60,338 nt of DNA from Klebsormidium nitens (lineage: Eukaryota > Plantae > Klebsormidiophyceae), in contig DF237150.1 in assembly GCA_000708835.1 (NCBI GenBank), positions 1-60,338 of the forward strand, given 5' to 3'. The position numbers were made by a program, and so were the translations under genes. The notes below the pieces were generated by a model that searched no databases, had not been told where the DNA came from, and saw nothing but the letters and a program-made list of their open reading frames with translations. This document shows positions 1,006-48,600 of the stretch, piece by piece. Every line of letters starts with the position of its first letter. Position 1 is the first letter of the stretch.

Positions 1006-1828
1006 CGGAATCACAATGCTTCCTCAGCACCCCAAGACTTAACCGCTGCTGAGCAAAAACGCGACCCAATACTGTCTATGGCGGCAAAGCTGAAGGCTGC
1101 GCCCGTGAGCAAACCCGTTGTGCGGAGCAGAGAAGATCTGGAGGTAAAGCTGAGATGTCTCCAACTTTTTGTTTGGTCTACGGCGTTTGCATGCCAATCT
1201 GGACTGCTGCTCTTCTGTTGTTGCGGACAAACTACTGCTTTTGCTCTTCAAGTGCCGTATGACTCTCTAAGAAGACGCTTGTTCTTGGACTTTATGGCGC
1301 TCGCCAAGGGGTGTTGCTGTTGACTTCACTTCCAAAGTGCACATCCTTCCGCAGCCGATAGTCACCGCTTGGAACCCTCTGCTTGCCGAAGGGTTGATTG
1401 TGTCTTCCTTGAGGGGGAGAAGAGGTTGCAGGAACTTGAGCAACTCTCTACCGTACTGAGCTAGCTTGGTTGCTCTTCTTGCAACACTTTCTGGTTGACA
1501 GAACCCTGATGAAAGCATCGTGCAAAGTTGATTTTACTGCTGGTCGTCTGTCCTAAGGGAGTTGATTGGGACTCGCTCAGGGGAAAAACCATAGAATTGC
1601 TGGTCTAATGTCTAATCAAGATTGGGTTTTTGGAAAGATTGGGTTGAGGGAAATGCAAAGTTGCTCTGGGGATTCTTCCTGGAGTTCTATGCAGAGAAGA
1701 AGCTGAGACTGTCTCGGCAACTGCTGCGAGCAAGCTTGCGCAGTTTGTACAGGAAACTGTTGTTGGACTTTTTGTTCCACAGCCTGGGTTGCCAGTGCTC
1801 AGGAAGGTTGTTTCACATCCCCGTTTTG
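1006..1828 (+). CDS. Possible exons of an unidentified spliced gene upstream of (or joined to) the PIN frame
   Basis: TGCAG|1006..1143|GTAAAG is a clean 46-codon exon-like block (RNHNASSAPQDLTAAEQKRDPILSMAAKLKAAPVSKPVVRSREDLE). A second stop-free block ~1650-1828 (..VALGILPGVLCREEAETVSATAASKLAQFVQETVVGLFVPQPGLPVLRKVVSHPRF) ends in G|GTAAG. I could not chain a complete model, and no family was recognised. Confidence 0.25.
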
Positions 1829-1989
1829 GTAAGGGCAATTGGCTTTGCAATTTGCGCCTCAAGGTCAGCACTTTATCGCCCTGTAACCCACTGTTGGACC
1901 AGCAAAGCGGTCTGGTCATATAAGCGCTTTGTCTGTTTGCGACTGCAGAGCATTCTCAGCCAGGCAATCGAGCCAATATCCGAGGAGCT

Positions 1990-2565
1990 TTGGGCGGTAA
2001 TGATCGAAGAAGGACTCGCGGAAGAGGAGCAAGCGCAGGCGCGGGCGCAGGTAGAGGAGTGGAAACGACGAAACTTAATGTAGCGCTGGGAGGTGATGTC
2101 ACAGTAATAGTCGATGCAAACATCATGGTGTCTCATGCATTAAGTGGGGCGTACAAAAAGGTATTTGAAGGGCACAAGACAGGGCAGTTTGAAGTGGTAA
2201 CGGTGTACCCGGCGCTCGTAGAAGCGGTGAAGAACATCGGTCGCTTAGCGGGGCCAGAAAAGGCTGCAAAGGTTTACGGGAAGTTTTGGGGGGATGATTC
2301 AAAGGGCGACCCGCAGCCGATCTACACGTATGAGTACCAGCCGGAGTACGAAGAAGAGGCCCTTAGACTCCTAGATGGGGCATGTAGGTCTGACTACAGG
2401 GTGGTGGCAGCGGTTTGTGGCCTGAAACTGCCGACAAGCGGGCAGAAGATGTTCATCACTGCCGACAAGCGGCTAGTAAGGGCGCTGAATAAACACGCCA
2501 AGCAGCTCCACGCTCGTTTGAACTTGACGATTCTGGACCCCAAGGACTTTGTAAAACTGCTGTAA
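1990..2565 (+). CDS. PIN-domain (VapC-like) ribonuclease; 5' end uncertain
   Basis: Open frame with the PIN acidic quartet in canonical order and context: VTVIVDAN (D, beta1), PALVEAV (E), RSDYRVVAA (D), FITADKRL (D), ending TILDPKDF..LL*. The first in-frame ATG lies after the first catalytic Asp, so the start must be GTG 2059, a splice acceptor (TTAATGTAG|2084) or a frameshift. Confidence 0.75.
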   Translation: MGGNDRRRTRGRGASAGAGAGRGVETTKLNVALGGDVTVIVDANIMVSHALSGAYKKVFEGHKTGQFEVVTVYPALVEAVKNIGRLAGPEKAAKVYGKFWGDDSKGDPQPIYTYEYQPEYEEEALRLLDGACRSDYRVVAAVCGLKLPTSGQKMFITADKRLVRALNKHAKQLHARLNLTILDPKDFVKLL

Positions 2566-3698
2566 TATTTGTCTTGCATGTTATGTTGAGATACTTGGAC
2601 GTCCACAGAAAAATGCTTTTTGTGTCATGGGTGGTGCATGTTGGCGCATGTTGCTTGATGCCATAATCCAGATGATACAATATACTTGTTGCATGAGTCG
2701 TGGGCCAGGTATATCGTGCTCCAGTCAAGGTTGTCGGTTTGCGTATGTATGTAGTCGGGTGATCTCTTGCGGATGCATGAAAGGGCCCGGGCCGGTCAAT
2801 CAGAGACGACAGGACATCATGGCATATATTCAAATGCAATAGAGATCCAATCGAGGTGCAGGTTGCAGGCTCATGCATGAAAGTGCATTGTACTATACTG
2901 AGTCCATTGCGTGACCAAGGAAAATTACAGGAATACGTAATTGGATCCAAGCAATTACAAACCAAACTTTTCTCTAGAGTCGATATCGAACTGGCCCGAC
3001 GAATGCACGCATGCAAGCATGCATGGTATATATGCACTGCAGCTATGCGCACGGAACTATCCGAAACTCGACTGACGTTGGCTGCGCATGCATGAAGGGA
3101 GTACGATAAGATTGATTGATCTATAGTATGATTTGCGCGTGCATGCGCTCATCATTGTTGTAATGCATCGGAATGCAATGCGTGCTTCTTCATAAGAAAG
3201 AGGACTCTAGCTCGCCATCATGGGCATAAACTGGCACAGACTCGGATGCAACATGTCACGCGTACTATGTACAATTCCTGTAGCAGCTTTGCCATATACA
3301 TACCAGATGCTGCCAGCTAGAGGGCTCCCGGTCCACATTATATATGCAGGGGACGTACGGGCTGGACGAAGACAATAGACTTGATCAGCGATGGGAAGCA
3401 TGGTCAAATATGATGATGCAAGTTAAATCTCCAATCAAAGCAAATGCGCAGTTCGTCTCAGATGGCGCCAGCTTCACTTCTAGAATTGGCAGACTACGCA
3501 GAGAACCCCGCGCTCTTTAGCACTGAGACTCAATTTGATACTCGAGTCCAATAGGAAAGGATTCTGCCCGCGAGCTGATGTACACCGTTCTTCTCATCTT
3601 CTTCTTCGACATTGACCTCCGCGCGTTTCCTACATTCGACGTGCTCTTTCAGCTTGAAGACAAGACTCCGTCTGGCCCTTGACCATCAACGTCAAACA

Positions 3699-4260
3699 AA
3701 GAATCGCCTGACACTGGGTACGCTGCGTGAGTGGGGCGACGGCCATACCAGGCAAGATGGAGCGTACCCACTGCCGGGCATTTGTCTTCAAGAAAGAATC
3801 GCCTGACACTGGGTACGCTGCGTGAGTGGGACGACGGCCATACCAGGCAAGATGGAGCGTACCCACTGCCGGGCATTTGTCTTTATGAAAGAATCGCCTG
3901 ACACTGGGTACACAACCATATTCTGCAACGTTCGCTTAAAGTTGATCGAGCGCACCCACTGCCAGGCATTCGTGTCTAAGAATCAACTTGCTAGGACTAG
4001 GATACGCTGCGCGAGTGGGGGGACGGCCAACCCAGGCAAGATGGAGCGTACCCACGGCCAGGCATTTGTCTCTAAGAAAGAACTCTCTGACACTGGGTAC
4101 AACGTTGCTTACAAGTAATCGAACGTACCCACTGCCCGGCGTTTGAATCTTTGAAGAACTGCCGGCCGATGGGTACCCTGTACCAGACGAGCATGGCCCG
4201 CAAATGCTGCTTAAACCTAGTTGGCTGTACCCACTGCAAGACATCAAATCTTAAGAACGA
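3699..4260. repeat. Array of ~53-bp hairpin scaffolds (GTACCCA...TGGGTAC) separated by 24-50 bp spacers
   Basis: Scaffolds at 3764-3816, 3859-3911, 3952-4005, 4048-4100 and 4125-4176, plus partial copies ending at 3721 and starting at 4227. Consensus is approximately GTACCCACTGCCGGGCATTTGTCTYYAAGAAAGAATCGCCTGACACTGGGTAC. The period is 95 bp in the first units. Confidence 0.9.
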
Positions 4261-4469
4261 AAAGGGCCAGCACTTGGAACATGTGCGGGAGGGACGCTCG
4301 CAATATGAACTCTTGAGGCCCTCGTATTAACTCGAAAGCTGCTCATGGCACTCGACACTGACCTGCTCGCTGTCCCGCTCGCCGCTGCCGCCTAACACAA
4401 GCGCCTGCTCCAGCTCTTGGGGTTGGGCTGGCGAGCGGGTTGATTCCTCTCCCCTAGAATCGCGGTTCT

Positions 4470-5030
4470 GTGCATGAGAAAAAGAGGATCAACTCGCAAC
4501 TCATAGAAAGGTGCAAGTTGTGCAGTGCACGCGAGTGCCAAATCAATCACAAATTGCACAGGCTTGAGGGATCGTGCATGCGAAATAACATTGCTTCAAG
4601 GAAAGGCCATACCCACGAGCAATTACCTTCTTCCACTCTTGAAAGAAGTGCTCAGTGTCAGGAGGTTTTGGCCGGGCACTCTCCTGAACCTCCTGCATGA
4701 CACGGAGTGCTTGATTAGTCGTCATTCGTGAATCACCCAATCACTACGTGGACGCTCAGCAGATGCCGGTGAGAAGGGGCATGGTGATTCTGACAAATGG
4801 CACACGTAGCCTGGCGGTACTTCGTGGCAACCTGGGATGGAGGCATGAGGCGGAAGGTAACTTGGCCTGGCGAATAACTCACCTCCAAGGTCGGAAGCTG
4901 AATCAGGGGCCGCCCGCGTGAGCTGCTCGGGGTGCCGGAATCGTGTGTGGGCCACCCCGGGTTGCTCTCCACGCCCCCGATCATCAGTTGTGTCGCTGCG
5001 TCGCACCAAACGAATCCCTCAATCAATCGT
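4470..5030 (-). pseudogene. Decayed retroelement-like ORF: 2A-like motif followed by PHD-like Cys/His fingers
   Basis: Minus strand reads FVWCDAATQLMIGGVESNPGWP (~4950-5010), then ..TCAICQNHH.. and, after a frameshift, CYFACTIPQACAICD*FGTRVHCTTCTFL*..LMH (C-x2-C...C-x2-C...H) with in-frame stops. Confidence 0.5.
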
Positions 5031-5374
5031 GCTCAGAATGGCATGCCCTTCAAGACAGACTCGCCTGATCAGAGTTTGATCATGCCCGAAATGACAAGCC
5101 TTCAAGTTGCATCCAAGCATTTGCTGCCCTATCTGCAAAACCAATCGAAGCCAACGACAGTGCTAGGAGATTTGCCACCCTACCTATCAGCGCCCTGCTC
5201 TTTGGTGCCGAAGAGTAGAAGACCTTGTCCGACCCGCACTCGTGGGCTGGAAATCCTGCGCGAGCAGGAGGTTGGCAGGTTAGAGTCGAGAAACCTGTCA
5301 AAGTTTCAGCGGGCCTGCGAACTTATGGAATCTGACAAAGTCTGCGCTCGCAACCGGGCAAAGGTTCACACCGT

Positions 5375-5660
5375 TCCGAAGGGCCCGGCCATACCCTGCA
5401 GGATGTACCAAAAGCGTACCAGCAAACGCCCAGTTGTTTCTTAAGATGTAACACAGACTTTCCTGGTACACATCCGCTCAACCTGCAAAGCTTCATGTGC
5501 ACCGTGTTGGAGGGTCCCCGGCAATGCCCTGCAACCTGAAGCCGTACCAGAAAACGCCCAGTTGATTTAGGAAGTATTACACAGTTTCTTGGTACAAATC
5601 CCCGCGCTCTGCAAGACCTCACACAGTGTTCAAGGGGCCCCGGCCATACCTTCCAAATAT
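5375..5660. repeat. ~128-bp diverged tandem repeat (2+ copies) containing GTACC...GGTAC scaffolds
   Basis: ACGCCCAGTTG at 5426 and 5554; GGCCC(C)GGC(C/A)AT(A/G)CC near 5380, 5510 and 5635; scaffolds 5416-5469 and 5544-5595, with a further dispersed copy at 6171-6225. Confidence 0.75.
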
Positions 5661-6234
5661 ATGACCCGGCTTCTGATGCCTTTTCCCCAAAAGAAGACGT
5701 GCTACTTCCCCAGCACTGCCAGATTCCAACACGAAATGAGATACATGGGTATGTCGCTGGCGAGACGGCTTGTCGCTCACCTTGGAATGCGCTCCTCGCC
5801 AGCACGCTCACCCTGGCAGCGGGCTGAACTCCAAACCTCGCGGGAGAGCTCCCGCTTGAAAGGGCGCACAGGCCCTCTGCGCGACGGGGGACGAAAGGCT
5901 GCCCGGGCTGCGCATCGTCACTGGCGGCGTGCGGAGGGCGGGCTGCGCCAGGACCGCAATCCGACCCGGGGGCGCTGGCGATCGCACGGAGGCCGGTTGT
6001 GGGGCTGTGGTGGGCGCCGCGGTCAGCGTACGCGGACTCTGAAAAGAAGGCGCTCAATGTGTCAGGAGTGCTGCGCTGGGAACGTCGCAATCGACCCACC
6101 AGGTACCCTCGAATTCGTGAGACGGGTCAAGGGCATGCACCCTGCCCCGGCCTTACCTGACAAGATCTGTGTACCAAAAAACACCCATTAACATTCTTAA
6201 GAAGTGATAGGTTGTTTCCTGGTACATATCCGTG

Positions 6235-6486
6235 ATGAGAAGTAGACCTGACGCACCACAAAGACGCTCTTCCTTGATACTCTGCTTTTGGGGCGCGGAA
6301 TCAAACCCCCTCCAGATGTTGCAAACCACAAAAACCACCTTCCAATTGCAGGCGAACCAGTCTGTCAGCTGGAGCTCGGCAGAGTGTCGACTCCAGTGGT
6401 CGTCTGACAATTCTGACAGGTCCGGGTGCTCACCAACTGTCGCCGTCCATGACCGAGGAGCGGCAGATGGCCCAGGCCCCTTCTGA
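6235..6486 (+). pseudogene. Short ORF starting with a degenerate 2A-like motif
   Basis: ATG 6235: MRSRPDAPQRRSSLILCFWGAESNPLQ, resembling (C)DAxxxxLLLxGD(V/I)ExNPGP. It begins 10 nt after a GTACC...GGTAC scaffold. Confidence 0.3.
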
Positions 6487-8541
6487 TGCTTCTCGGGCTC
6501 AGGGGAGGCAGGGTTCACCATCCTTCGCGCCATCTCGCGCCCCTGAAGCCCAGAATCTGCCCCAGAAATCTCGTCGAAATCTTGAACAGACGGCCGGGCC
6601 ATACTAGGAGATGTAATCCCATTCAAAGAATCGATTCTCCTCGTCTGACTGGCTTCGATTGACGCCACTCACTACATTTGTGGCCTCTTCAGGCAGAGAT
6701 GTATGTCATCACCGCCGCCTGCTAAATCTTCTCAGGATGGCAGAACATTCAAAGCTGAGACGACGGTAACAGCGGGTGGCTCGAGGAACCTCTGGGCGCC
6801 CATTGAAGGCGCGATTGTGCCGCGGACGTAGATTGCGCGAAGCGAAATCGCTCCGTCGAAGCTGAATAAATGTTGATGATCGCGGTGTACTTGAACAGCC
6901 AGCACAGAAATGGAAGCACCGAACGGGTCGCTCCAGAAGCGGCTCGCCATCCTGACCCCGTTTGATTTCTTGAATGCTGCGAGAGATGGGCGCTTTTGAC
7001 TCAAATCAAAAAGCGCGTGACGCTGACGTTGTCTGATCAACAAGGCACCGCACCTGTTGAACCTAACCCATAGCCGACGGTTTGCCTGTCCTGGGCGCAA
7101 AGAGGCAACAGAGACAACGACGTTACAGAGAAACCTTGAAAGCGCTTCTTTGGCGTGGGATATTGTGACCTGCGACGGAATCGATCTCAGCGAAGAATAA
7201 CAAGGAGGTGGAATTGATTGACGGCTTCTAATCACATTCTCGTGCAAACATCTCCTGGTTCTATTGGTGGGCCAATTCGAGAATTTTAACACAGCCGCCG
7301 CCATCCAGATTCAGAATACGAGGTCAAGCTTTGAACATGGCCTTTTTCTCTGAAGAAATACGACAAAGAAGGCTGCGAATGGACACCGATCGTCGACCAG
7401 CGACCGTTTGCTGTGCTATAGATTCTGCGTTCAATTGACCTATGCACCCCTTTTATGTGGACTAAAGCGCGCCTCTTATGAGTCTACAAACTCGCTCTAT
7501 TGTGCACGTCTGCTCCAACATATCTGGCCTTCACGAGACCAAAAGTTAGCAACCTGAGGGCATCATTGCCAGCGCTTCTGAAACAGAAGGGAGGCGTACT
7601 TGACGCCCAACTGAACCGCTTCCAGGTGCAATCGTACGGTCAGGCGGACCGCAGAACCGCAGAATAGCTGGGGGACGACCAAGAATCGCAGCGCTGCCGT
7701 CCAGATTTTGACGTCAAAAAATGAACGCGCGAGATTTTTCGTTTATCCTCAGTTAGGCCCGGTTTGTCCAAACCCGAGTATCGGAACCTGTCCTGCCAAA
7801 GCTTGCGACCCCCTAGCTAAACTTTGCAGACTGGAGTCCTTATGTTCAGATCGGACGGTAGCGCTGCGATTTCGTCCATCGCGAAGTTCTGCGGTCCGCC
7901 TGCAGTGCAGCGCGCAATGGGCGGTCGTTTGAGATGTCTTCGCTTGCCTGAAGGACTTCTTGAGTTCAGATGATCTCCAACTTTTATAGTGTTCTGGCTT
8001 CTTCTCTAATCATGAAGTCCGAAAAGATTGCAGTTTACGACAGACCCAAAAAGGCGGCTTCGGAGCGACTTCAAGGATATTGATTAGCCGGTGATTCTTC
8101 CTTAAGAAACAGCTCGAGATTATGCGCCGCGGTCCCTTAATTGACATTGGCTAGATTGGCTCTGAGCAATATTAATCCAGGCGTGTTGCTGAGATCTGAA
8201 AAGAGAAGGGATCCGAAGCCTTTAGTGACATAGCAAGAAAGCGAAGTCAGCGCCCCATTGCAGAACCGACAACTAAAAAGCATGGAAGTCTCTTTCCTAC
8301 TCAAGCTGTAGCCGGTATCTTTAAAGCAACTACTGCGCTGATGGCTCTGAATCACCTGGATGGGCGTGGCCTTTCAGTGCAACCACAAAGACGCTTCACC
8401 ACTGCCAGCGTCTGCACTTCGTCCGGAACGCGCACGCGGCGGCTTGCGGTTAAACGAGAGTAGTGCACTGGCATCGCGCCAACAGATGTCTACTATTGAC
8501 ATTATGCAAGACATACATATATGAAGTTCGAACGATCATTT

Positions 8542-8899: not shown

Positions 8900-11800
8900 G
8901 CAGCTCGATCGTAACGCTTGCCGTGCTTAATCACATGGCCTTGGCAGCCAACAGCAGATGTCCTCACAGCCGCCATCCAGGTTTTTTCTCTCCTTCTGTC
9001 GATGCTCATGGCGCTCCTTCCATAGAGCCAAGCTAGCTAGGCCGCATGTGGGCGCCAGGTCGACGAAATAAGCGCGCACGACAGGCGCCGCGGGAAGCGC
9101 GCGCCGCCGGGTTCCTAGATTTCTGATGCGCATACGCGGCGCGGCCGCCCGCGCCCTGGCCTTCAGCGCACGCTGCGCTTGGAGTCCATCATAAGTGCGC
9201 GCAGTAAGGCACCCGTGAGGAAGTGCACAGATACGAAACATTTTCGGAAGATTGATAATTGCACTGCCCGGCCGTCTCGGACGATCCAGGCTGTCGACTC
9301 GCTCAGCGCTTCCGCGAGCGTCTTGGATCAGTCGAAGGGCAATGATTTGCGAGCATCTTCTCGCTAGTGGTTTTCTCGCCGGACCTTCTGAAGCAATTGA
9401 TTCTTAAATTAAAGCGGGGCCGACTCGAAACGGCTTCGTTGAGACCGTGACAAAGTTCTTCTTCGCCAGCGCTCGAGAACGGCTCCCGAAAACGTCACGT
9501 GACCTCCATCATGACGCCCTTCCCAACATTATCATTGAACCGACGTGAATCGACGTATTCATCGTTCGCTCAAGTTTTGAGACGCACCGGCTGGAATCCG
9601 AGAACTGTCAACAACTTCAGCCGCGTTGATAGGGATGCAAAGGTACATAAGACGCGCATTTCGATACGGATCGGTTTGATCAGAGCAGAGACAGTGCCCA
9701 TTGAGTGCAAAGGAGGCCAGCAAGTCTGCCCATGCACTGGACACTATTTGGAGCCACAAGACTGAGGTCCATTCTGTGTTGCGCCAAAACGGAGCGTTCA
9801 ATGGTACTTGCCTCAATGAAGCATAACGAAAGGGCGGACGTAGAGACAGCGACTTGCTAGATAAGGTTTGTGCTTTTTCAAGCGTGACCATCTCACGAGC
9901 GAAGGGACTAATGTGCTTTTGCGAATGGAACGGCTCGGATCCTGTTTACCACTTTATCGTTGAGCTCCGTACACATGTACTGGCTCAAGATCAAGAACTT
10001 CCTCACTAACTTCGCATGGTTGTCCCGAAATCAAAGCTATCAAGCGCTGCATTTATGGAACTCACTATAAATCAATACCCGGTTTAAGATCGTTTGCTGA
10101 GGCCGTTTTGATCTCAGAAATTCAGCTTTTAAGATCAAAATGGTCTGACACAACGTTTAAGACCAAAATAGCCTGAAATCCTGAATAGGTTTAAGATCGA
10201 AGTGGCCTCACAACGATCTTAAACCGGGCTATCATTTATAGTGACTGTAGGTTTAGTGTCTACTTATTTCGAATTCTTAGTAGCAGCGGCCTGCAAAGGA
10301 AATGTGCCTGAGGTGAAAATGCGACAGCGTCAGTTGGCACTGCCTGGCTACGGCCCTCTGGCAGCTTTGAACACGTCGCGCGCATACGAGCTGATCCAAG
10401 ATCAAGTTGGACGTCAAGAGTGATCCATCAACAAAGACTATAATCAAGAAAGAACCAAAGACGCGTGTAAACGCAGAGCCTTCTTCTTGTGACGATTGCG
10501 CGAGCTTTGGAAACCCCCAACCTGAGCGTACAAGAAACTCATCGGGAATATAGCGGCTTCTGAAGATGCCGCGCTGGACAGACGTTGGCGTTCCTGACGG
10601 GCCAGTCCTCACAAAATCGTCTTGGCCACTCACCCCGTGACCTCATATTTACTTTTCCTGAAGCAATCACCGGGAGAAGTTACTCAAGAACCGGCTCGAC
10701 GCCTTCCATCAGAGGCTTGTACTTTCTAAGAAACCGGGCCAGGTCCATCTATCATTCTGAAAAACGCCAGTCGTAAGGGGCGTGGCCGTTGCTTTTCATT
10801 TAACGGCAAATTTTGCTGGCTCGGCTTGAGTCGGCACGGCGATTTTGACCTTCGGGTCACGGCAAGCTTCATCACCGCCAGCTATGACTGCGGTGCTCTT
10901 GAGAAGCGTGGAACGAGAAAATGAATGGAGCTTGTTATATCGATCTTAGAGAGATTCCTCCAATGGGATTCTCGCGCTCTCCCGCACATCTTGTCCGCAA
11001 AAGGATTGACGAATGGAAGTCTGATCTTCTTCGGTACACGAGCAAATTAAAGCTCCAGTGTGCAAATACGGCCTAATTCTGGTTGCTTAAGCAGAACGAG
11101 GTGGGGCGCAGGAAAAAGGACATCAACCAAACGGAACATAAGACGGCAGGCTGGGTAAGTAGAGTGTAACTCAACAGTCCGATGTGATGATTCACAATCA
11201 CAATACGGGGATGTCCCCATTTGTCAGACATCGAGACATGGGTTCGTCAGTCTCCGCTCGATGCTGAAATTTTGGAAAACGGTAGCGTCGAAGAAGAAGA
11301 AAGTTCATAGAAGCCCTTCAATGCCGATTGCGCGAGTGAACGGCTCCAGCCCGCAGTCGATATGTCGACAATGTATTGGTCTCGAGCTACTGAGCGAGTC
11401 AAGTCACTGCCGTCCTTAGCTCAACGTACCACAAACAGCTCTACAGTTCACCACCGAGAAGTACCAAAGAAGAAGCGAAGGCACACCCGTTGAACCTGCA
11501 GCCGTTCCTCGCATGACAAGCTATAAGGCGCCCCTGCCCACGTGAGCGTCTCTATTAGAATGGCTTCAAAGCGCCCCGCACAGTTGGAGCGCGGCCCATT
11601 CCAAGTACTCACGTGGCCTCGGCAGCCACAGCAGATGTCCTCACAGCTGTCGGCGCAAAACCGTTTCTCTTCTTTTGTCGCTGCCCATGCCGGCGCTCCT
11701 TCCATAGAGGCCGCGCTAGGCCGCCTCTGGGCGTGCGACCGGCGCCGGCGGCCGGAGTGCGCGGTCGGCAACCGTTGCGCGCGGTCCCCTCTAGTTCTTC

Positions 11801-25359: not shown

Positions 25360-38051
<12,692 letters not shown>

Positions 38052-41525: not shown

Positions 41526-44286
41526 CTACAAGAAAGCGGTTGCACTTGCTTCGAGACTGTTGTTCTGCAGAAGTATCCAACAGCGTCTTTCAAGAGGCGC
41601 ATTCTTTTCCAACGTTACTGACATGAGCTTGCAAATCAGGACCCACTAACCATCACATGACCGCTCTCGATGATATTCTCTGAAGCACTTTTGACGATCA
41701 GAGTGCATGAGCCAGCTGATCTTACATCTAGGCAGCTGGTGCAGATCGCCTGAAAGTCCTTGCTTCGAAACTCGTCCAGCGTCATCTCTTCGTACTTGCA
41801 GGGGCAGAGAGTGTTGAAGAATCGGCAGCGGTCACAGACTGGCTTTTCGCAGTAGACGCATGGCTCATGCCGCGACGCATCGCATTGGGGGCATACTTGA
41901 GCCCCACACTCTCCGCACGTAAGAGGCCTGTAGGGAACAAGGGGAGGGTGATCTAAGTTGGTGGAAAACACAGGTCGAAACTCCAGCTTATCTCCTCTGA
42001 GCCGGCTGCTGGACCAGACGAAGAGCAACTCTGCTTTCAAAGGTTGACTCCAAGTATGCCACCGCAGCCAAGGCTTGAGTAAGAATGTACAAATCGTAAT
42101 TTCCAATCAAGCACGGACCACTTCTCTCCGCGTCGGTGACTTGAATTCTTGACCGGTGACGGTCGAACCAGACGTTATCAGATGAAAGGGAAACAGAAAT
42201 CTTTGCTGTGAAACGAAGAATTGATTAGGAGGAGGTCCAAAGGTAACCCTTTCTTTACCAATCAAGCATTGTCAGCAAATTTGAGAGACACTCGACTCGT
42301 CGCAATTGCAACAAATTGTGAGGCCGGTCTCTCATCTCAAATACGACAGAGAGCGTTCCTTTGGTCGTCGGACTCATGCCTTTGAGAACGCTGCGCAGGC
42401 TTGGAGCCTGGGCATAGTCCCATGCTGACCAGTTTCGTGCCCGGTTCACGTCCCCACTTCGCCAATTGAGAGCATTCATTGGAATCAGTAGTAGAAAGGA
42501 CACATACTGCCAAGAGTCGGTTCCTCAGAGCTTATATTGAACTAGAGACGTAAAGCACAGCTGTTGGGCTGGGGGTACTTACAGTTTGTTGCTGCAGTCT
42601 TGGCACAGCCCATGGAAGCAAGGAGGACCTTGCCCATCAAAATGCTCTTCGCAGCCTACCCCCTGGCAGGCGCCACACAGCTTCTGCATAAATGAGATAA
42701 AACTTCTAATTGTTGGGGGACTCCATGTTGGGGACAGGTTAGAAACCCGATGATTAGGGCCCACAGAAAGAAGGTGAAGTGCCACACAACCACCCGACTT
42801 ATGGTTCTTGCGCATCTGGCATGGCATACGTTGTCCTACTAAACATTCAAAGACCATTTCCCCAGGGCCAGGAAAGAATTAATCATTAGTAACTTGTGGA
42901 GTACATTAAGAATAAAGAAAGAACACTGGTTTGGGTTTTGATGCCCATAAGTTAGCAGAGAGGATTGGCTTTTCCTTCTACGGAAATGCCTAGTTTGGAT
43001 TTCGTTCGTGTCGCTCCATACTTGATGATGATTAGGAAGATCAGCTGCAAAGCTTAACATGCGCTCCAACGGCCAGAATTTATTAGGGCATATACCTAAT
43101 CTGACTCTTATCAGCTTGATTGGAACGGAGCTGAAATTCTGTGAAGCTCACATAGCATGCCCCAAATAAGTCAAAGCCATCCACGTTGTTTACTCACCGT
43201 CTTCCACCAACAAACCCCTTCGGGCCCGAGCACCTCTTGGCAAAAACTGCACTCATGCGTCTCCTCCACCATATGGCACGAAGGGCAGATGCTTGCATCG
43301 TCGAGGTCATCTTGGAGGGGCGTGTTCTCAAAGCACTCTTTGAACAGATCCAGAGGACACTCCAGCCATTCGACACCATTTAGGTGCAGAACATAGTGGG
43401 GCAAAACACCTGTAGCAGGGTCAGAGTGCCTGTCAGTAGGGGGAAACGCAAAGCAAGGAGCGGCGTGGTTGTTCGATTGAATTCCACTCAGATGTCTTCT
43501 TCTGGCTAAATCTTGGTCCAGCGCTCCTGATTTTGCCAGATTGCAGTGCAATCGACAAGGAAGAGAGTCGGTAAGTGTGGGTGAAGGAAGAGGTTCCATT
43601 GCTGAGAGTGCGGGTGAAGGAACTGGGCACCGCAGTGGTTCCTGGACTTCCTCACAAACAAAGACTCAAGTCACATGGTGGCTGCGGACTGTAGAGGGCG
43701 CTGATCAGATGCTGAATACAAGGCCGCACTTGTTGAAGTCGGTGACACCCAGCTAATTACAACATGTTGACTACAAAGTGAAAGCAAAGCAAACTGAGGC
43801 ACGATTAGACATGGTTTGCTGGAGACAATTGGTCAAGAGCTTACCACCACAAGTCGCGCCTGCTTTCTTCGTCCGAAGTAGCTTGAGCATGTGTTGGGCC
43901 AGTGGAATGACACTTCTCCATGTGAAAGGCCCACACTCGCTGATATTCACAAATTCTGGAACGTCCTTCAAACTTGACACAATATTGTGAACAGAGTGAT
44001 CAGTCAAAAGCCGGCAACATGAGATGTCAATGCTGACCAGGCCCTGACCGTTCAGGTTGTCCAGAACAGTTGCTAATTTCTCATCCGTGATCTTTGTCTT
44101 CAGGCCCTGAGGAATGCAGATTTCTGTCCACAGACTGGGGTCTGTTGTCGCAGCTTCCTTCCATTCGCGTGAAACACAGCAGACTGTCAAAAGTGTGCGC
44201 AGGTCTTTTGCAAAGTAGGGCAACAAACAGGACAGTGCTGGGCTTGGGAACTCAAAATCTGCTTTCAGTTGTTTGTTGACTTCCAT
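41526..44286 (-). CDS. F-box/LRR-like protein with Cys-rich C-terminus (SKIP14/SKIP28-like)
   Basis: Exons: 44286-43845, 43409-43198, 42683-42583, 41927-41726, and a tentative last exon 41564-41526; phases are compatible. F-box PSPALSCLLPYFAKDLRTLLTVCCVSREWKEAATTDPSLWTEI, then LRR-like LVSIDISCCRLLTDHSV, then multiple CxxC pairs (CPSC, CSFC, CGAC, CQDC, CGEC, CPQC, CVYC, CDRC, CTSC). Confidence 0.75.
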
Positions 44287-44867
44287 TTTGTATTGCACAA
44301 GAACACTTCGCGCACAGCTCCCCGGCAACTTTTAGATACACAGCAGCCTTTGGCCTGGGGCTTTGCGCACTTTCTCTTGCAATAGCCTTCTTATGGCTGC
44401 AGCAACTTGGTCACGCACTCGCATAGCTGCTTGGGACGTTTTTATGAAGCGGCCACACGGCAAAACCCAATGGCAAAGGCAAACGTGGGCGTCCTTCTCC
44501 GCTGATTTGACTCTTGAGGGGAGTACCTAGGTATTAGACATCCAAAACGCAGGCCACCAATCAGCGAGCAATCAGCCAGTACTGACCTGCTCACCTGCTC
44601 CTTCGCTAGCACAGACACCACTGGCTGCAGGACCCACCTGCTCACTCCGAGTCCGAGTACGAGTCAGGCTTTTGTCATTGATCTTTTTGAGAAACTGGCG
44701 CGAATGCAAAGTAATCATTGCCGTCCGATGTGATCTGTTGTCTTCGATCTTGACCAGTGCCAGTTGGCAGACGTAAAATCGTCGGATACCATATCCATTC
44801 GACGGCCAAAAGCTAATCGAATATCCTCACTCCAATACTAGCCTGACGATCGCGTCAACATTCTAGT

Positions 44868-45081
44868 TTGAAAGCTGTGCATATCATCGTTCAGGCTTGC
44901 ACGGGTGGCCAAGCACACCCGAGTGAGACAGGGCCGGGGGCGGCAGCTTGGCTGTCTGCGGCTCCTTTGTTTCAGGCACTGACGATTGAGGACGAGTGCT
45001 TCCGGACGGCTTTGCGGATTTGGCTTGGTTTGCCGCATCCGATGGTGGCGGGCATTGCGTTGTGCGAGTGCGGGCAGTCAC
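44868..45081 (+). mobile_element. Fragment of an RLE-type (CRE/NeSL/R2-like) non-LTR retrotransposon, running into the gap
   Basis: GAAAWLSAAPLFQALTIEDECFRTALRIWLGLPHP...LCECG matches the linker (GxWLxAxP...L...FRxALRLRLGLP) leading into the zinc knuckle that precedes the restriction-like endonuclease in these elements. Confidence 0.75.
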
Positions 45082-45588
45082 NNNNNNNNNNNNNNNNNNN
45101 NNNNNNNNNNNNNNNNNNNNNNNNNNNNNNNNNNNNNNNNNNNNNNNNNNNNNNNNNNNNNNNNNNNNNNNNNNNNNNNNNNNNNNNNNNNNNNNNNNNN
45201 NNNNNNNNNNNNNNNNNNNNNNNNNNNNNNNNNNNNNNNNNNNNNNNNNNNNNNNNNNNNNNNNNNNNNNNNNNNNNNNNNNNNNNNNNNNNNNNNNNNN
45301 NNNNNNNNNNNNNNNNNNNNNNNNNNNNNNNNNNNNNNNNNNNNNNNNNNNNNNNNNNNNNNNNNNNNNNNNNNNNNNNNNNNNNNNNNNNNNNNNNNNN
45401 NNNNNNNNNNNNNNNNNNNNNNNNNNNNNNNNNNNNNNNNNNNNNNNNNNNNNNNNNNNNNNNNNNNNNNNNNNNNNNNNNNNNNNNNNNNNNNNNNNNN
45501 NNNNNNNNNNNNNNNNNNNNNNNNNNNNNNNNNNNNNNNNNNNNNNNNNNNNNNNNNNNNNNNNNNNNNNNNNNNNNNNNNNNNNNNN
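45082..45588. other. Assembly gap (507 N)
   Basis: Run of N characters. Confidence 1.
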
Positions 45589-45658
45589 CACGCTTCTTCC
45601 TGTATCAGACTTAGAGGCGCCCCCTGCTGGTCCTTCAAGGATTGCTGGACATCCTCGG

Positions 45659-48600
45659 ATGGGCTGTGCCGCTGTCGCGAGCTCTGCCATCACCCTGCGC
45701 CACCTCACAATTGCCTTGGCAACTTCGCGAATTGCTCACGATTCGACTCGGAAGGCGTTGTGCAAGGGGTTCGCCAGCCAAGGAGCTTTCTTTGGAGCTC
45801 CGCTACCCAGTCCTATCCGTGCAGCTCCGTCCTTCTTCCTCCAGAAGCGGGAAGCTTCTCAGCAAGCAAGCATGGCCGTTACAAAGATTAAGGTGGAGAA
45901 CCCGGTGGTGGAAATGGACGGGTGAGACTGGTGGCGTTCGTTGCCAATTGCTAACTGTTTCTGTTTGGACAGCCAGTATGGTTGTCAATTGGAAGATTGC
46001 AATTGTGGTATTATCATATCCTGGCATCCAGAGGAATATTTCCTGTACACTTATCGCATCGGACTATGTACTGTTAGATTCATTAGGATGGCATTGAAGA
46101 ACATTGCTTTGCAGTCTGCATTGCCACCTTTGGTTGAGCATTAGTGCATGTTGCCACCAGGTCAATATACAAGAAGCAAGTCGGCAATGATGGCCATGGG
46201 AATCTGGTGGCGTTTCTGCATGTGCTATCAAAAGAAGAGCACCGATCTGCTCTTAGCTTGGGAACTGCTATAAGGGCGTTAAATGGGGTTGCTGTTAGAG
46301 CTGTACCTGCCTTGCAGTTCAGCAATCAGGACAGCAATCAGGTCACACTGGGGATCACCTCATGGACGCTCCTTTGGCACAGATCAATGAGAATAGTTTG
46401 GGTCTCCCAACAATCTGCGTCAATTGACCACTGGATTCCTCCAATAATTCTGTACTCAAAACTGTGATGTGGATGGTGTTTCCAACCTTCTGACTCAGGT
46501 TGAGTGGCCTTTCTGAGAAGTGTGCAAGTTCAAAATTCCTACTTGAAAGCGCGTACTGTTTTTTGAAAGTTGGAACAGAAAGGCAAGTTTGTTTATATGC
46601 GCACTCGATTGTGCAGGGATGAGATGACAAGAATCATCTGGCAGATGATCAAGGACAAGGTAAGTGCTCACAGTCAAGTTGCAGAGTTGTTGGTATCAAA
46701 GTATTGTCTGCTGCGCATCCACCTCCATGTCCTTTGTCACTGATTGATTCTGGCTGCTAGTGCGCCTTGTGTCAGAATCGTCAGCATTGTTGGAGCTTCA
46801 GACCGTTGAATGTTCTCGTTTTATCGCGCACTTTGCTTTGTCCAGGTTTTGCCTTAGTCCTTGCTTGCATGCCAAAGTTGCAGGCCAACGGGGATTGCAA
46901 TCAGGTGCTGCCTAACATCTTCAAAGCGAGCCAACAAATCCGACTGTACGCTGTTATGCTGTGTCGTAGCCCTGCGAGCAGCACCACTTGCACCCAAGTT
47001 TACGATTCTATATTGAAAGTATGCCGCAGGCTTAGTGAAATGTGATGTTATTGCTGCAGCTCATCTTCCCTTTCCTGGACCTGGACATCAAGTACTTTGA
47101 CTTGGGAGTTGAGCACCGTGATGCGACGGACGACAAAGTAACCCATGATGCGGCTGAGGCCACCCAGAAGTGAGTGTTACTGTGTTATCAGGAGATTGAG
47201 AGAGTTGCACATCGTTTGAGGTTGCTTTAAGATGCGGTCGAATTGTGCTGCTCTCCAGGTCTGTTGGGTTACATCGATGTCAGAACACAGAAGCTAGTCG
47301 ACTTCACAATGCTTTGTATCAAATATAAGTTGGATTCCTTCACTCATGAGGAGCTTGAGCAAGCACCACAAGTTACTTCTAAAATCCGCTGTGGCTTTTG
47401 AATCTCTCCTCGCATCCTGCTTTCACATGCATTTGCGTGCTGCTTGAAAACAATGATTAGCGTCCACTGCTTTGCAGTTTTCAGCATGCACTCTCGTCAA
47501 CTGTCATCAACCTTCTCACAGGCAGTCAATCACAAATCTACATGGTAGCAAGCCCGATTGATTTGTCAGGCTTGGAAGAAATCATGCTAGGGCCTTTGGT
47601 AGAGATTTGAAAAGCTTCAAAGCACTACTCTGGCCGTCAAATCCATAACGGATTTGCCAGATCTTTGACTAGCCTCTGTCGCCAATATGGGTTAAGTGGA
47701 GAGCCTCCGTGTTCTTTCAGGTACAATGTGGCGATCAAGTGCGCCACCATCACCCCCGACGAGGGCCGCGTTAAGGAGTTCAAGCTGAAGCAGATGTGGA
47801 GGAGCCCCAACGGAACCATCAGGAACATCCTGAACGGAACGGGTAGGTTCCAGAGATTCGAACAAACTCTGTCGCAGCCTGGTCAAAAGTTACCTGGTCA
47901 TGTTTTATCACATCGTCCTTGGTCGGTGGCAGCCAAGGTCAGCCAAGATTGGGCCTCGTCCTCTTTGAAGCTTATGCTTTGGAATGGCTCGCCGGTTGTG
48001 AGGTGTTGCCAAGCAGTTAACTCGAGTTTCCTACCGCTTCTAATGTATATTGCTCGCTGTTTGTCTTTGAAGATAAGGAAACTTCGTCTGCTTACTAGTG
48101 CTGAAGTCTGATATCCAGGGTCACCATTTGTGTGTGCAGTCTTCCGTGAGCCCATCATCTGTAAGAACGTGCCACGGCTCATCCCTGGTGAGTGCAGTCC
48201 TTAGAGCTTGCAATACTCCGGTGCTCGATTTGCTTGGAACAATACTGTCGAGGGTCCAGCCTAAACGAAAGCCCTCATGGCTTTGGAAGCAAAGAGACTT
48301 GCAGTTGGATGTTTTGTCTGCGACCTGGGGACTAATTCTTGGTGCTTGGACTAGGTCGGTCAACGGGAATAACAGCCCAAATGCACAAAACAATCTACGC
48401 CTTTTCGCAGCACGTTGTCCGAAAGACTCCGATTGAAGTAATGCAACGGCTCACGGGCCATGTCTTAAATCTTGAAAGAAGTTCCTTCATTTCCCCTTGT
48501 TGTGATGATGAGGTGGCACTTTGTGCTGCAGGGTGGAAGACGCCCATCTGCATTGGCAGGCACGCGTTTGGTGACCAGTACCGCGCCACCGACTACGTCG

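Follow-up and report, generated by a model that had tools for sequence, protein, structure and literature searches.

A VapC-like PIN domain behind an out-of-frame acidic segment: a possible toxin-antitoxin-like module in the last exon of a Klebsormidium nitens nuclear gene

Analysis of a 60,338-nucleotide (nt) stretch of DNA from the streptophyte alga Klebsormidium nitens (contig DF237150.1 of assembly GCA_000708835.1, positions 1 to 60,338 of the forward strand; hereafter, the window) identified a short acidic open reading frame (ORF) followed, in a different frame, by a compact PIN domain of the VapC type. Our interpretation, which we put forward tentatively, is that positions 1949-2565 constitute a conserved, lineage-restricted, toxin-antitoxin-like module of two frames within the final exon of a nuclear gene with introns. 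The module would have two parts, a short acidic helical coding segment (isoelectric point, pI, 4.3) and, 29 nt further 3' and shifted back by one base in frame, a complete VapC-like PIN of a single domain, extending from strand 1 at about 2098 to position 2565. A VapC-type PIN toxin with an adjacent acidic partner is a hallmark of prokaryotic toxin-antitoxin systems, and we know of no compact VapC-type PIN with an acidic partner that has been established in a plant-lineage nuclear genome.

The PIN frame, whose codons start at positions equal to 1 modulo 3, is open from 1924 to its TAA stop codon. It reads ..ALGGDVTVIVDANIMVSH.. and, around strand 1, ALGGDVTVIVDAN... As the original prediction, made from the DNA letters alone, had described, there is no ATG in this frame 5' of the first catalytic Asp codon, and the acidic ORF ahead of it ends in a TAG at 2083; the first in-frame ATG is at 2125. 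That prediction also stated that the four acidic active-site residues are kept. With residues counted from 2083, these are D11, E47, D104 and D128, and they proved to be invariant in the sole homologue that we identified (n = 2 members), as was a further Asp, D152. In the predicted secondary structure the four residues were located at the canonical places for a PIN domain, that is, following strand 1, within the helix that follows strand 2, at the start of a helix, and following strand 4. The motif surrounding Asp 104, SDYRVVAAV, resembles D..IAA.A, which we take to be the corresponding VapC motif.

By sequence, the assignment of this peptide to the PIN families was marginal. The window peptide matched Pfam PIN_2 with an E-value of 8.7e-4 and 20 bits, which is under the gathering score of 22.4, and PIN_3 with an E-value of 0.025; the homologue had no Pfam match. 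Extending the Pfam scan to an E-value of 10 returned PIN_2 and PIN_3 only, with no match to the NOB1, UTP24/Fcf1, SMG6 or Swt1 families. Searches of NCBIfam, PADLOC, PHROGs and PDB sequences gave nothing usable for the PIN, the PDB matches, by single sequence and by profile, being spurious. PIN_2 has been listed as a toxin family of toxin-antitoxin systems that is found in bacteria and archaea only (PMC5499597).

At the level of the fold the VapC-like call was upheld. An AlphaFold2 (AF2) model of the frame 2084-2565, built on the two-sequence alignment, consisted of strands alternating with helices, in keeping with the three-layer alpha/beta/alpha fold and parallel sheet of PIN domains, and had a predicted local distance difference test score (pLDDT) of 75 and a predicted template modelling score (pTM) of 0.74. 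Nearly all of the best Foldseek matches of the model were PIN domains. In VIA-align comparisons the top structures were bacterial VapC toxins, led by Rickettsia felis VapC2 (Z 11.5, root-mean-square deviation 2.7 Å, 127/134 residues), with about 15 other VapC toxins at Z 10-11, yeast Nmd4 at Z 10.8 and SMG6 at Z 8.9. The original prediction had named best homologues among eukaryotic PINs as an outcome that would refute its toxin-antitoxin reading, and this was not what we observed. As Nmd4 lies within one Z unit of VapC2, the origin of the PIN is not decided by its fold alone. The nearest language-model cluster was a bacterial PIN_3 cluster, which we treat as a lead only. We class the K. nitens protein as a lineage-restricted, previously undescribed member of the VapC-like PIN fold, and it may be a metal-dependent RNase.

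Relatives of the PIN were extremely few. The only named protein that it matched was the hypothetical protein KFL_002010010 (GAQ84685.1) of K. nitens. An exhaustive HMMER search of 1.84 billion representative proteins identified two real members, the K. nitens model and a protein of 206 amino acids (P0002) with 43% identity, and two extra matches were discarded as low-complexity false positives. A word-indexed search with the PIN, followed by a profile search with the two sequences (5.8 billion proteins), recovered no member beyond the same two. No PIN relatives were found in IMG/VR, in GTDB (185,579 prokaryotic species, each represented by a single genome) or in the JGI metagenomes, and no collection searched held a prokaryotic, viral or metagenomic one. 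The exact DNA pattern of strand 1 matched 104 metagenome stretches, all of which were judged to be chance matches. With no relative beyond these two, neither a named donor nor a tree of the family is within reach.

The second member is encoded on an 11.7-kb Logan contig from run SRR23617307 (hereafter, L002). None of the genes called on L002 had a Pfam match, for which reason the contig looks eukaryotic. Its G+C content (GC) is.509 and its observed/expected CpG ratio.88; the corresponding values for the window are.507 and.90. No Rfam family was found on L002, and outside the module neither synteny nor DNA similarity was found between it and the window. Literature searches for the KFL_002010010 identifiers, the run accession, and Klebsormidium PIN or toxin-antitoxin genes returned nothing relevant.

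The layout of the two frames was the same in both loci. In each, the PIN frame lies at -1 to an upstream acidic ORF, the TAG of the acidic ORF is exactly 29 nt 5' of the catalytic Asp codon, ahead of which the PIN frame lacks an ATG. The gene caller had begun P0002 at a GTG, and the first ~45 residues of the called protein result from reading, in the PIN frame, an upstream ORF that belongs to the next frame and ends ...YSEKEWAAIIEGLPSDAQDAAWDEVRRAQARLKEQGTQKGESEAKGP. One proposal of the original prediction was that a single ORF had been broken by a -1 frameshift mutation. We reject this, and likewise an assembly error, because the same offset and stop distance occur in a diverged homologue whose PIN is intact and whose substitutions are of the coding type. 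The overlap of ~25 nt that had been reported between the two ORFs depends on the PIN start chosen; what is firm is that the stop precedes the Asp codon by 29 nt and that the PIN frame is open across the acidic ORF. Between the two PIN ORFs, mismatches at the first, second and third codon positions numbered 70, 53 and 103, and the proportions of nonsynonymous and synonymous differences (pN and pS) were 0.41 and 0.79, the latter being saturated. We are highly confident that the PIN is real and under purifying selection.

The acidic ORF of the window, whose codons start at positions equal to 2 modulo 3, ends ...AIEPISEELWAVMIEEGLAEEEQAQARAQVEEWKRRNLM before its TAG, with a C-terminal end reading ...SEELWAVMIEEGLAEEEQAQARAQVEEWKRRNLM. 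Its similarity to the L002 counterpart, its composition, and the placement of splice sites together suggest that it is probably coding. The similarity was concentrated in one block, SEELWAVMIEEGL in the window and SEKEWAAIIEGL in L002, in which the same residue was present in 8/12 aligned codons and the DNA differences were mostly synonymous changes at acidic-frame third positions. Translated in the PIN frame, this block was not conserved (about 2/13 residues). The Smith-Waterman score of the two acidic frames was 40 (z 3.0), a value reached by 10/500 shuffles, and the other same-frame pairs had z-scores of 1.6-1.8 and the cross-frame pairs of at most 1.1. Since synonymous sites between the loci are saturated, any similarity that has been kept implies constraint. 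The GC at the first, second and third codon positions (GC1/2/3) of the acidic segment was.68/.36/.64 in the window and.67/.43/.76 in L002, and that of the PIN core was.59/.36/.63 and.60/.33/.60, respectively. Both acidic peptides had a low pI (4.3 in the window, 4.7 in L002), and those of the PINs were 8.8 and 7.0.

Splice acceptors were similarly placed in the two loci. Pyrimidine-rich acceptors (14-16/20 pyrimidines) lie ahead of the acidic segment in both and are in phase 0 with the acidic frame. In the window the acceptor between 1948 and 1949 (TGCAG, 14/20 pyrimidines) is the one used by the public annotation, and its equivalents in L002 are strong acceptors between 9175 and 9176 and between 9250 and 9251. 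The ATGs of the window's acidic ORF (2000 and 2078) have no counterpart in L002, from which we infer that translation would start in an upstream exon. The acidic ORF of L002 has no ATG, and neither ORF has a conserved AUG in the exon. In L002, the 281 nt from 9176 to 9456, spanning the acidic ORF together with the first part of the PIN, contain no ATG in any frame, where about four would be expected; the equivalent 164 nt of the window contain three, so that ATG depletion is not common to both loci. As a separate observation, the acidic frame of the window is open for 155 codons (1616-2080), beyond the likely acceptor between 1948 and 1949. Its upstream part is rich in Leu, Arg and Cys, is not protein-like, and had no homologue in our searches.

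Based on this layout, we speculate that the module descended from, or converged on, that of type II toxin-antitoxin pairs, and that the acidic peptide would be a partner or an inhibitor of the PIN. Both products would be made from one locus by a switch of frame, for which three routes are conceivable. The switch could be a choice of splice site, as an exon starting at 1949 has the acidic frame in phase 0 and one starting at 1951 has the PIN frame in phase 0; the tandem acceptor CAG/AG/ at 1948/1950 (slashes mark cut sites) would therefore toggle between the frames from one phase-0 donor. Alternatively, different upstream start codons could be used and the region would be dual-coding. The third route would be initiation at a conserved near-cognate codon within the conserved motif, where a conserved Trp codon provides, in the PIN frame, TTG at 1990-1992 in the window and GTG at 9298-9300 in L002, both flanked by G at positions -3 and +4. 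The stretch between the acidic stop and the Asp codon also has an in-frame CTG at 2086 (in L002, a TTG at 9445) and no in-frame ATG. A functional toxin-antidote relation between the acidic peptide and the PIN is plausible, albeit rather unlikely, and we regard as unlikely also the fuller proposition of a domesticated toxin-antidote pair in one streptophyte exon that is gated by a frame switch at splicing or at near-cognate initiation.

Several observations weigh against our interpretation. The shared position of the acidic stop is weaker than it seems, with a chance coincidence estimated at roughly 0.1-0.2, because the acidic frame has many closely spaced stops from the beginning of the PIN domain onwards. 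The similarity of the acidic frames (p ~0.02) was noticed after the fact in two sequences only, and outside the one 12-codon block the substitution pattern (ratio of nonsynonymous to synonymous substitution, dN/dS) does not separate the three frames. The tandem, frame-toggling acceptor of K. nitens has no counterpart in L002. Searches of Pfam, NCBIfam, PADLOC, PHROGs and Atlas gave no usable match to an antitoxin or DNA-binding domain in the acidic peptides. A toxin-antitoxin origin is not supported by any prokaryotic relative in the collections searched, and binding or neutralization between the two products is purely our inference.

Table 1. Coordinates of the features discussed, in window numbering unless L002 is named
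Feature	Position	Strand	Basis or remark
Acidic helical ORF segment, 44 codons + TAG	1949-2083	+	pI 4.3; TAG 2081-2083
Conserved block SEELWAVMIEEGL	1979-2017	+	matches SEKEWAAIIEGL in L002
Stop-to-Asp stretch, 29 nt	2084-2112; L002 9428-9456	+	weak protein conservation, ALGGDVTVIV vs VSGLPELIVL
VapC-like PIN domain ORF	2098-2565	+	strand 1 (VTVIVDAN) to TAA 2563-2565; protein pI 8.8
Asp 11 codon GAT, first catalytic acidic residue, end of strand 1	2113-2115	+	sequence, alignment, model
Glu 47 codon GAA, second acidic residue, motif ALVEAVKN	2221-2223	+	sequence, alignment, model
Asp 104 codon GAC, third acidic residue, motif SDYRVVAAV	2392-2394	+	sequence, alignment, model
Asp 128 codon GAC, fourth acidic residue, FITADKRL (T-x-D after strand 4)	2464-2466	+	sequence, alignment, model
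Asp 152, further invariant Asp	2536-2538	+	alignment with L002 homologue
Pyrimidine-rich 3' splice region, tandem acceptors CAG/AG/	1927-1950	+	AG at 1947-1948 and 1949-1950
Candidate upstream exon, PIN frame	1695-1828	+	donor TTG/GTAAGG at 1828/1829, phase 1
Annotated upstream coding exons	199-201 (ATG only), 723-794, 1006-1143	+	public model
Intron of public model KFL_002010010, 110 nt	2051-2160	+	GT-AG; removes strand 1 with Asp 11

A serious alternative, though one that we consider somewhat unlikely, is an ordinary spliced gene with a single product, which is how a eukaryotic domain without an ATG of its own is by far most commonly expressed. Its terminal exon would be read in the PIN frame only, and the acidic ORF would be a meaningless alternative frame of GAG/GCG-rich DNA. 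The PIN could then be entered in the acceptor region at 1948-1950, for example from the donor at 1828 (120-nt intron) or by joining the annotated donor at 1143 to 1951, with a basic linker rich in Arg and Gly (pI 12) before the PIN; or it could be entered at the TAG acceptor immediately before 2084. In keeping with such a gene, the PIN frame is free of stops across the whole acidic segment in both loci, beginning at 1924 in the window and at ~9224 in L002. The chance of this after codon shuffling was 0.46 for the window and 0.04 for L002, so that the open frame is unexpected in L002 if it is unread and is a hint of reading from upstream. In addition, the differences in length between conserved anchors are all multiples of 3 (15 and 24 nt). 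The donor at 1828 (G/GTAAGG) is phase-compatible both with 1949 (split codon GAG), in which case the Arg/Gly-rich linker is read into the PIN, and with 2084 (255-nt intron, split codon GCG), and the AG before 2084 has the same position and phase in both loci. The latter junction, 1828 to 2084, was among the proposals of the original prediction. Its phase compatibility stands, but the TAG acceptor is purine-rich, with 7/20 pyrimidines in both loci vs 13-16/20 for the TGCAG-type acceptors of the locus; the candidate exon upstream had no Pfam match, no L002 counterpart and a PIN-frame GC3 of only.39; and a segment that looks coding would become intronic. Against any reading in the PIN frame alone, the acidic segment read in that frame has a GC1/2/3 of.64/.68/.34 in the window and a GC3 of.41 in L002, compared to a GC3 of.60-.63 in the PIN core, whereas its acidic-frame signature is normal in both loci, and the conserved block has been kept as acidic-frame protein and not in the PIN frame. 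Moreover, the two loci share no conserved upstream exon, no such exon has a homologue, and protein searches with the annotated N-terminal 105 residues found none.

The locus might also be an unexpressed relic of a transferred prokaryotic vapBC-like cassette, its frames intact through selection in the donor lineage and a recent transfer. Several points agree with this: the layout and size match those of type II toxin-antitoxin pairs, no eukaryotic start codon precedes the Asp in the PIN frame, the top structural and language-model neighbors are bacterial proteins, and the locus is at a gene-poor, repeat-bearing scaffold end. We nonetheless find it improbable: no prokaryotic, viral or metagenomic relative was present in 1.8-5.8 billion proteins, the genomes of 185,579 species or the JGI metagenomes, and two copies with saturated synonymous sites have both kept open frames of 160 codons and all of the acidic residues. 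The DNA around both copies, furthermore, is eukaryote-like and sparse in genes and has matching GC and CpG contents; the ORFs do not have good starts by bacterial standards either, and the acidic ORF is preceded by strong splice acceptors. Programmed -1 ribosomal frameshifting, in which most ribosomes would stop at the TAG at 2081 and a fraction would slip back to make an acidic-PIN fusion, is in our estimation very improbable. Both loci keep the -1 offset, and a PIN frame without stops across the acidic segment would permit such a slip, but neither locus had a slippery heptamer X_XXY_YYZ in the zero frame (the window had only a loose AAACTTA and L002 none), no stable RNA structure was found 3' of the junction (z -0.72 in the window, +0.26 in L002), and the loci have no conserved sequence at a slip position common to both.

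Least probable, in our assessment, is that the public annotation is right. The gene KFL_002010010 spans 199-2565 of DF237150.1 and encodes 239 amino acids, and in the deposited model (GAQ84685.1) an intron at 2051-2160 joins the acidic segment to the PIN in one frame, which would yield a non-catalytic protein without strand 1 and the first Asp. The intron has GT-AG borders and restores one frame. However, the 37 codons that it cuts hold the catalytic Asp and the stretch where DNA conservation in the locus is highest (GATGCAAACATC.TGGTG, which L002 has unchanged), its acceptor (AAAAG) has 6/20 pyrimidines, there is no GT at the equivalent position of L002, and the first coding exon of the gene is 3 nt long, with the donor GTGAGC. 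A 3-nt coding exon and a weak acceptor are traits typical of a gene predictor bridging a frame change, and this intron, which bridges the two frames, and the ATG-only first exon are probably prediction artefacts. The earlier description of the PIN as free of internal introns thus applies to the open frame itself and is at odds with the public model. No canonical GT-AG intron linking the acidic to the PIN frame was present within 1975-2112 of the window, and of the few GC-AG or AT-AC combinations that would join the frames there, none was common to both loci. A U12-like ATATCC at 1976 was rejected by inspection; the 108-nt intron that it would define keeps the frame and is missing from L002.

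The closest comparison for the two-frame module is with prokaryotic VapBC pairs such as R. felis VapBC2 (3zvk) and Shigella flexneri VapBC (3tnd/5ecw). The likenesses are a single-domain PIN of ~130-160 residues with the D-E-D-D set of acidic residues and Z-scores of 10-11.5, a small acidic ORF directly upstream that ends a few codons before PIN strand 1, and a contrast in charge, the partner being acidic and the nuclease neutral to basic. Other features differ. The K. nitens locus is nuclear and eukaryotic and has splice acceptors; ATGs are lacking in the PIN ORF ahead of the Asp and are not conserved in the acidic ORF, so that the two ORFs lack operon start codons of their own; the upstream ORF had no match to an AbrB, RHH, Phd, HTH or other DNA-binding domain; no prokaryotic protein with detectable sequence similarity was found; and the PIN is ~28 residues longer than VapC, with an insertion around residues 68-86. 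As several of the defining features of VapBC are thereby absent, we describe the whole as a toxin-antitoxin-like module and not as a member of the system. The original prediction had offered, as one of three alternatives, a horizontally acquired or virus-borne cassette of this kind. The toxin-antitoxin-like layout is what fits the locus best and was strengthened by L002; the acquired or viral origin is undemonstrated, in view of the lack of a prokaryotic or viral relative in the collections searched, the PIN frames without an ATG before the Asp in both loci, the unconserved ATGs of the acidic ORF, and the strong splice acceptors that precede it. In sum, what that prediction observed is confirmed, and what it made of the observation is partly supported.

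Eukaryotic systems offered partial parallels. The PINs of RNA decay (yeast Nmd4, 8rdd; human SMG6/SMG5, 2hww/2hwy) share with the K. nitens protein the fold, at a near-equal score, and a eukaryotic host, but there is no sequence similarity to them and no Pfam match to their families. SMG5 and SMG6 are large multidomain proteins, and to our knowledge no PIN of the Nmd4/SMG5/SMG6 type has an out-of-frame acidic ORF upstream. In the wtf drivers of fission yeast, which are poison-antidote genes, two antagonistic products, both membrane proteins, are made through alternative transcripts from the overlapping coding sequence of one gene. The likeness to our module is one of concept only, as there is no homology and the product here is a predicted nuclease. 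Bicistronic loci have been described in the nuclear genomes of chlorophytes, in which two ORFs, often in different frames, are on one transcript with short spacers, one of 14 bp, and some stop/start overlaps (PMC11291117). In those loci ORF 2 has an AUG start codon, the next AUG after the one that opens ORF 1, and ribosomes reach it through leaky scanning (PMC11291117). The PIN frame differs, as neither K. nitens nor L002 has an in-frame AUG ahead of the catalytic Asp. Klebsormidium is, moreover, a streptophyte and lies outside the scope of that work.

The remainder of the window fits a eukaryotic nuclear genome with ordinary nuclear genes, as it contains an exon for a partial AAA ATPase (the C-terminal part of the AAA domain and the lid domain; 32309-33433, minus strand) and an F-box-like ORF (43774-44328, minus strand). 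The first 20 kb, in which the module is located, have few genes, contain tandem repeats, and have no ORF with a Pfam domain. No transposon-like terminal repeats were found flanking the module. Just 3' of the PIN gene, at 3695-4260, there is a decaying tandem repeat with a unit of ~95 bp and an internal palindrome. A second set of direct repeats (5367-5655 and 6194-6232; ~122-133 bp, three copies, 65-77% identity) sits inside the neighboring annotated minus-strand gene at 4327-6602, which has no Pfam domain. Farther along, a marked local GC skew of -0.23 at 36001-38000 lies over minus-strand ORFs (35847-37399) that had no Pfam match. At 44001-46000 the GC falls to 0.40, compared to ~0.50 elsewhere in the window, and several long ORFs overlap on both strands at 44868-46097; the one that was scanned, 44996-45922, had no Pfam match.

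The linkage of an out-of-frame acidic ORF to a PIN is not explained by normal eukaryotic gene expression. At a minimum, our findings probably correct the public annotation of this gene, from which the catalytic strand of the PIN is missing, and they draw attention to a streptophyte locus where dual coding or initiation at a codon other than AUG is possible. If the fuller proposition of a domesticated toxin-antidote pair with a frame switch is true, the locus would be a eukaryotic analogue of a type II toxin-antitoxin system that is gated by splicing or by translation. If both products are made and interact, it would show how such a module can be regulated without an operon.

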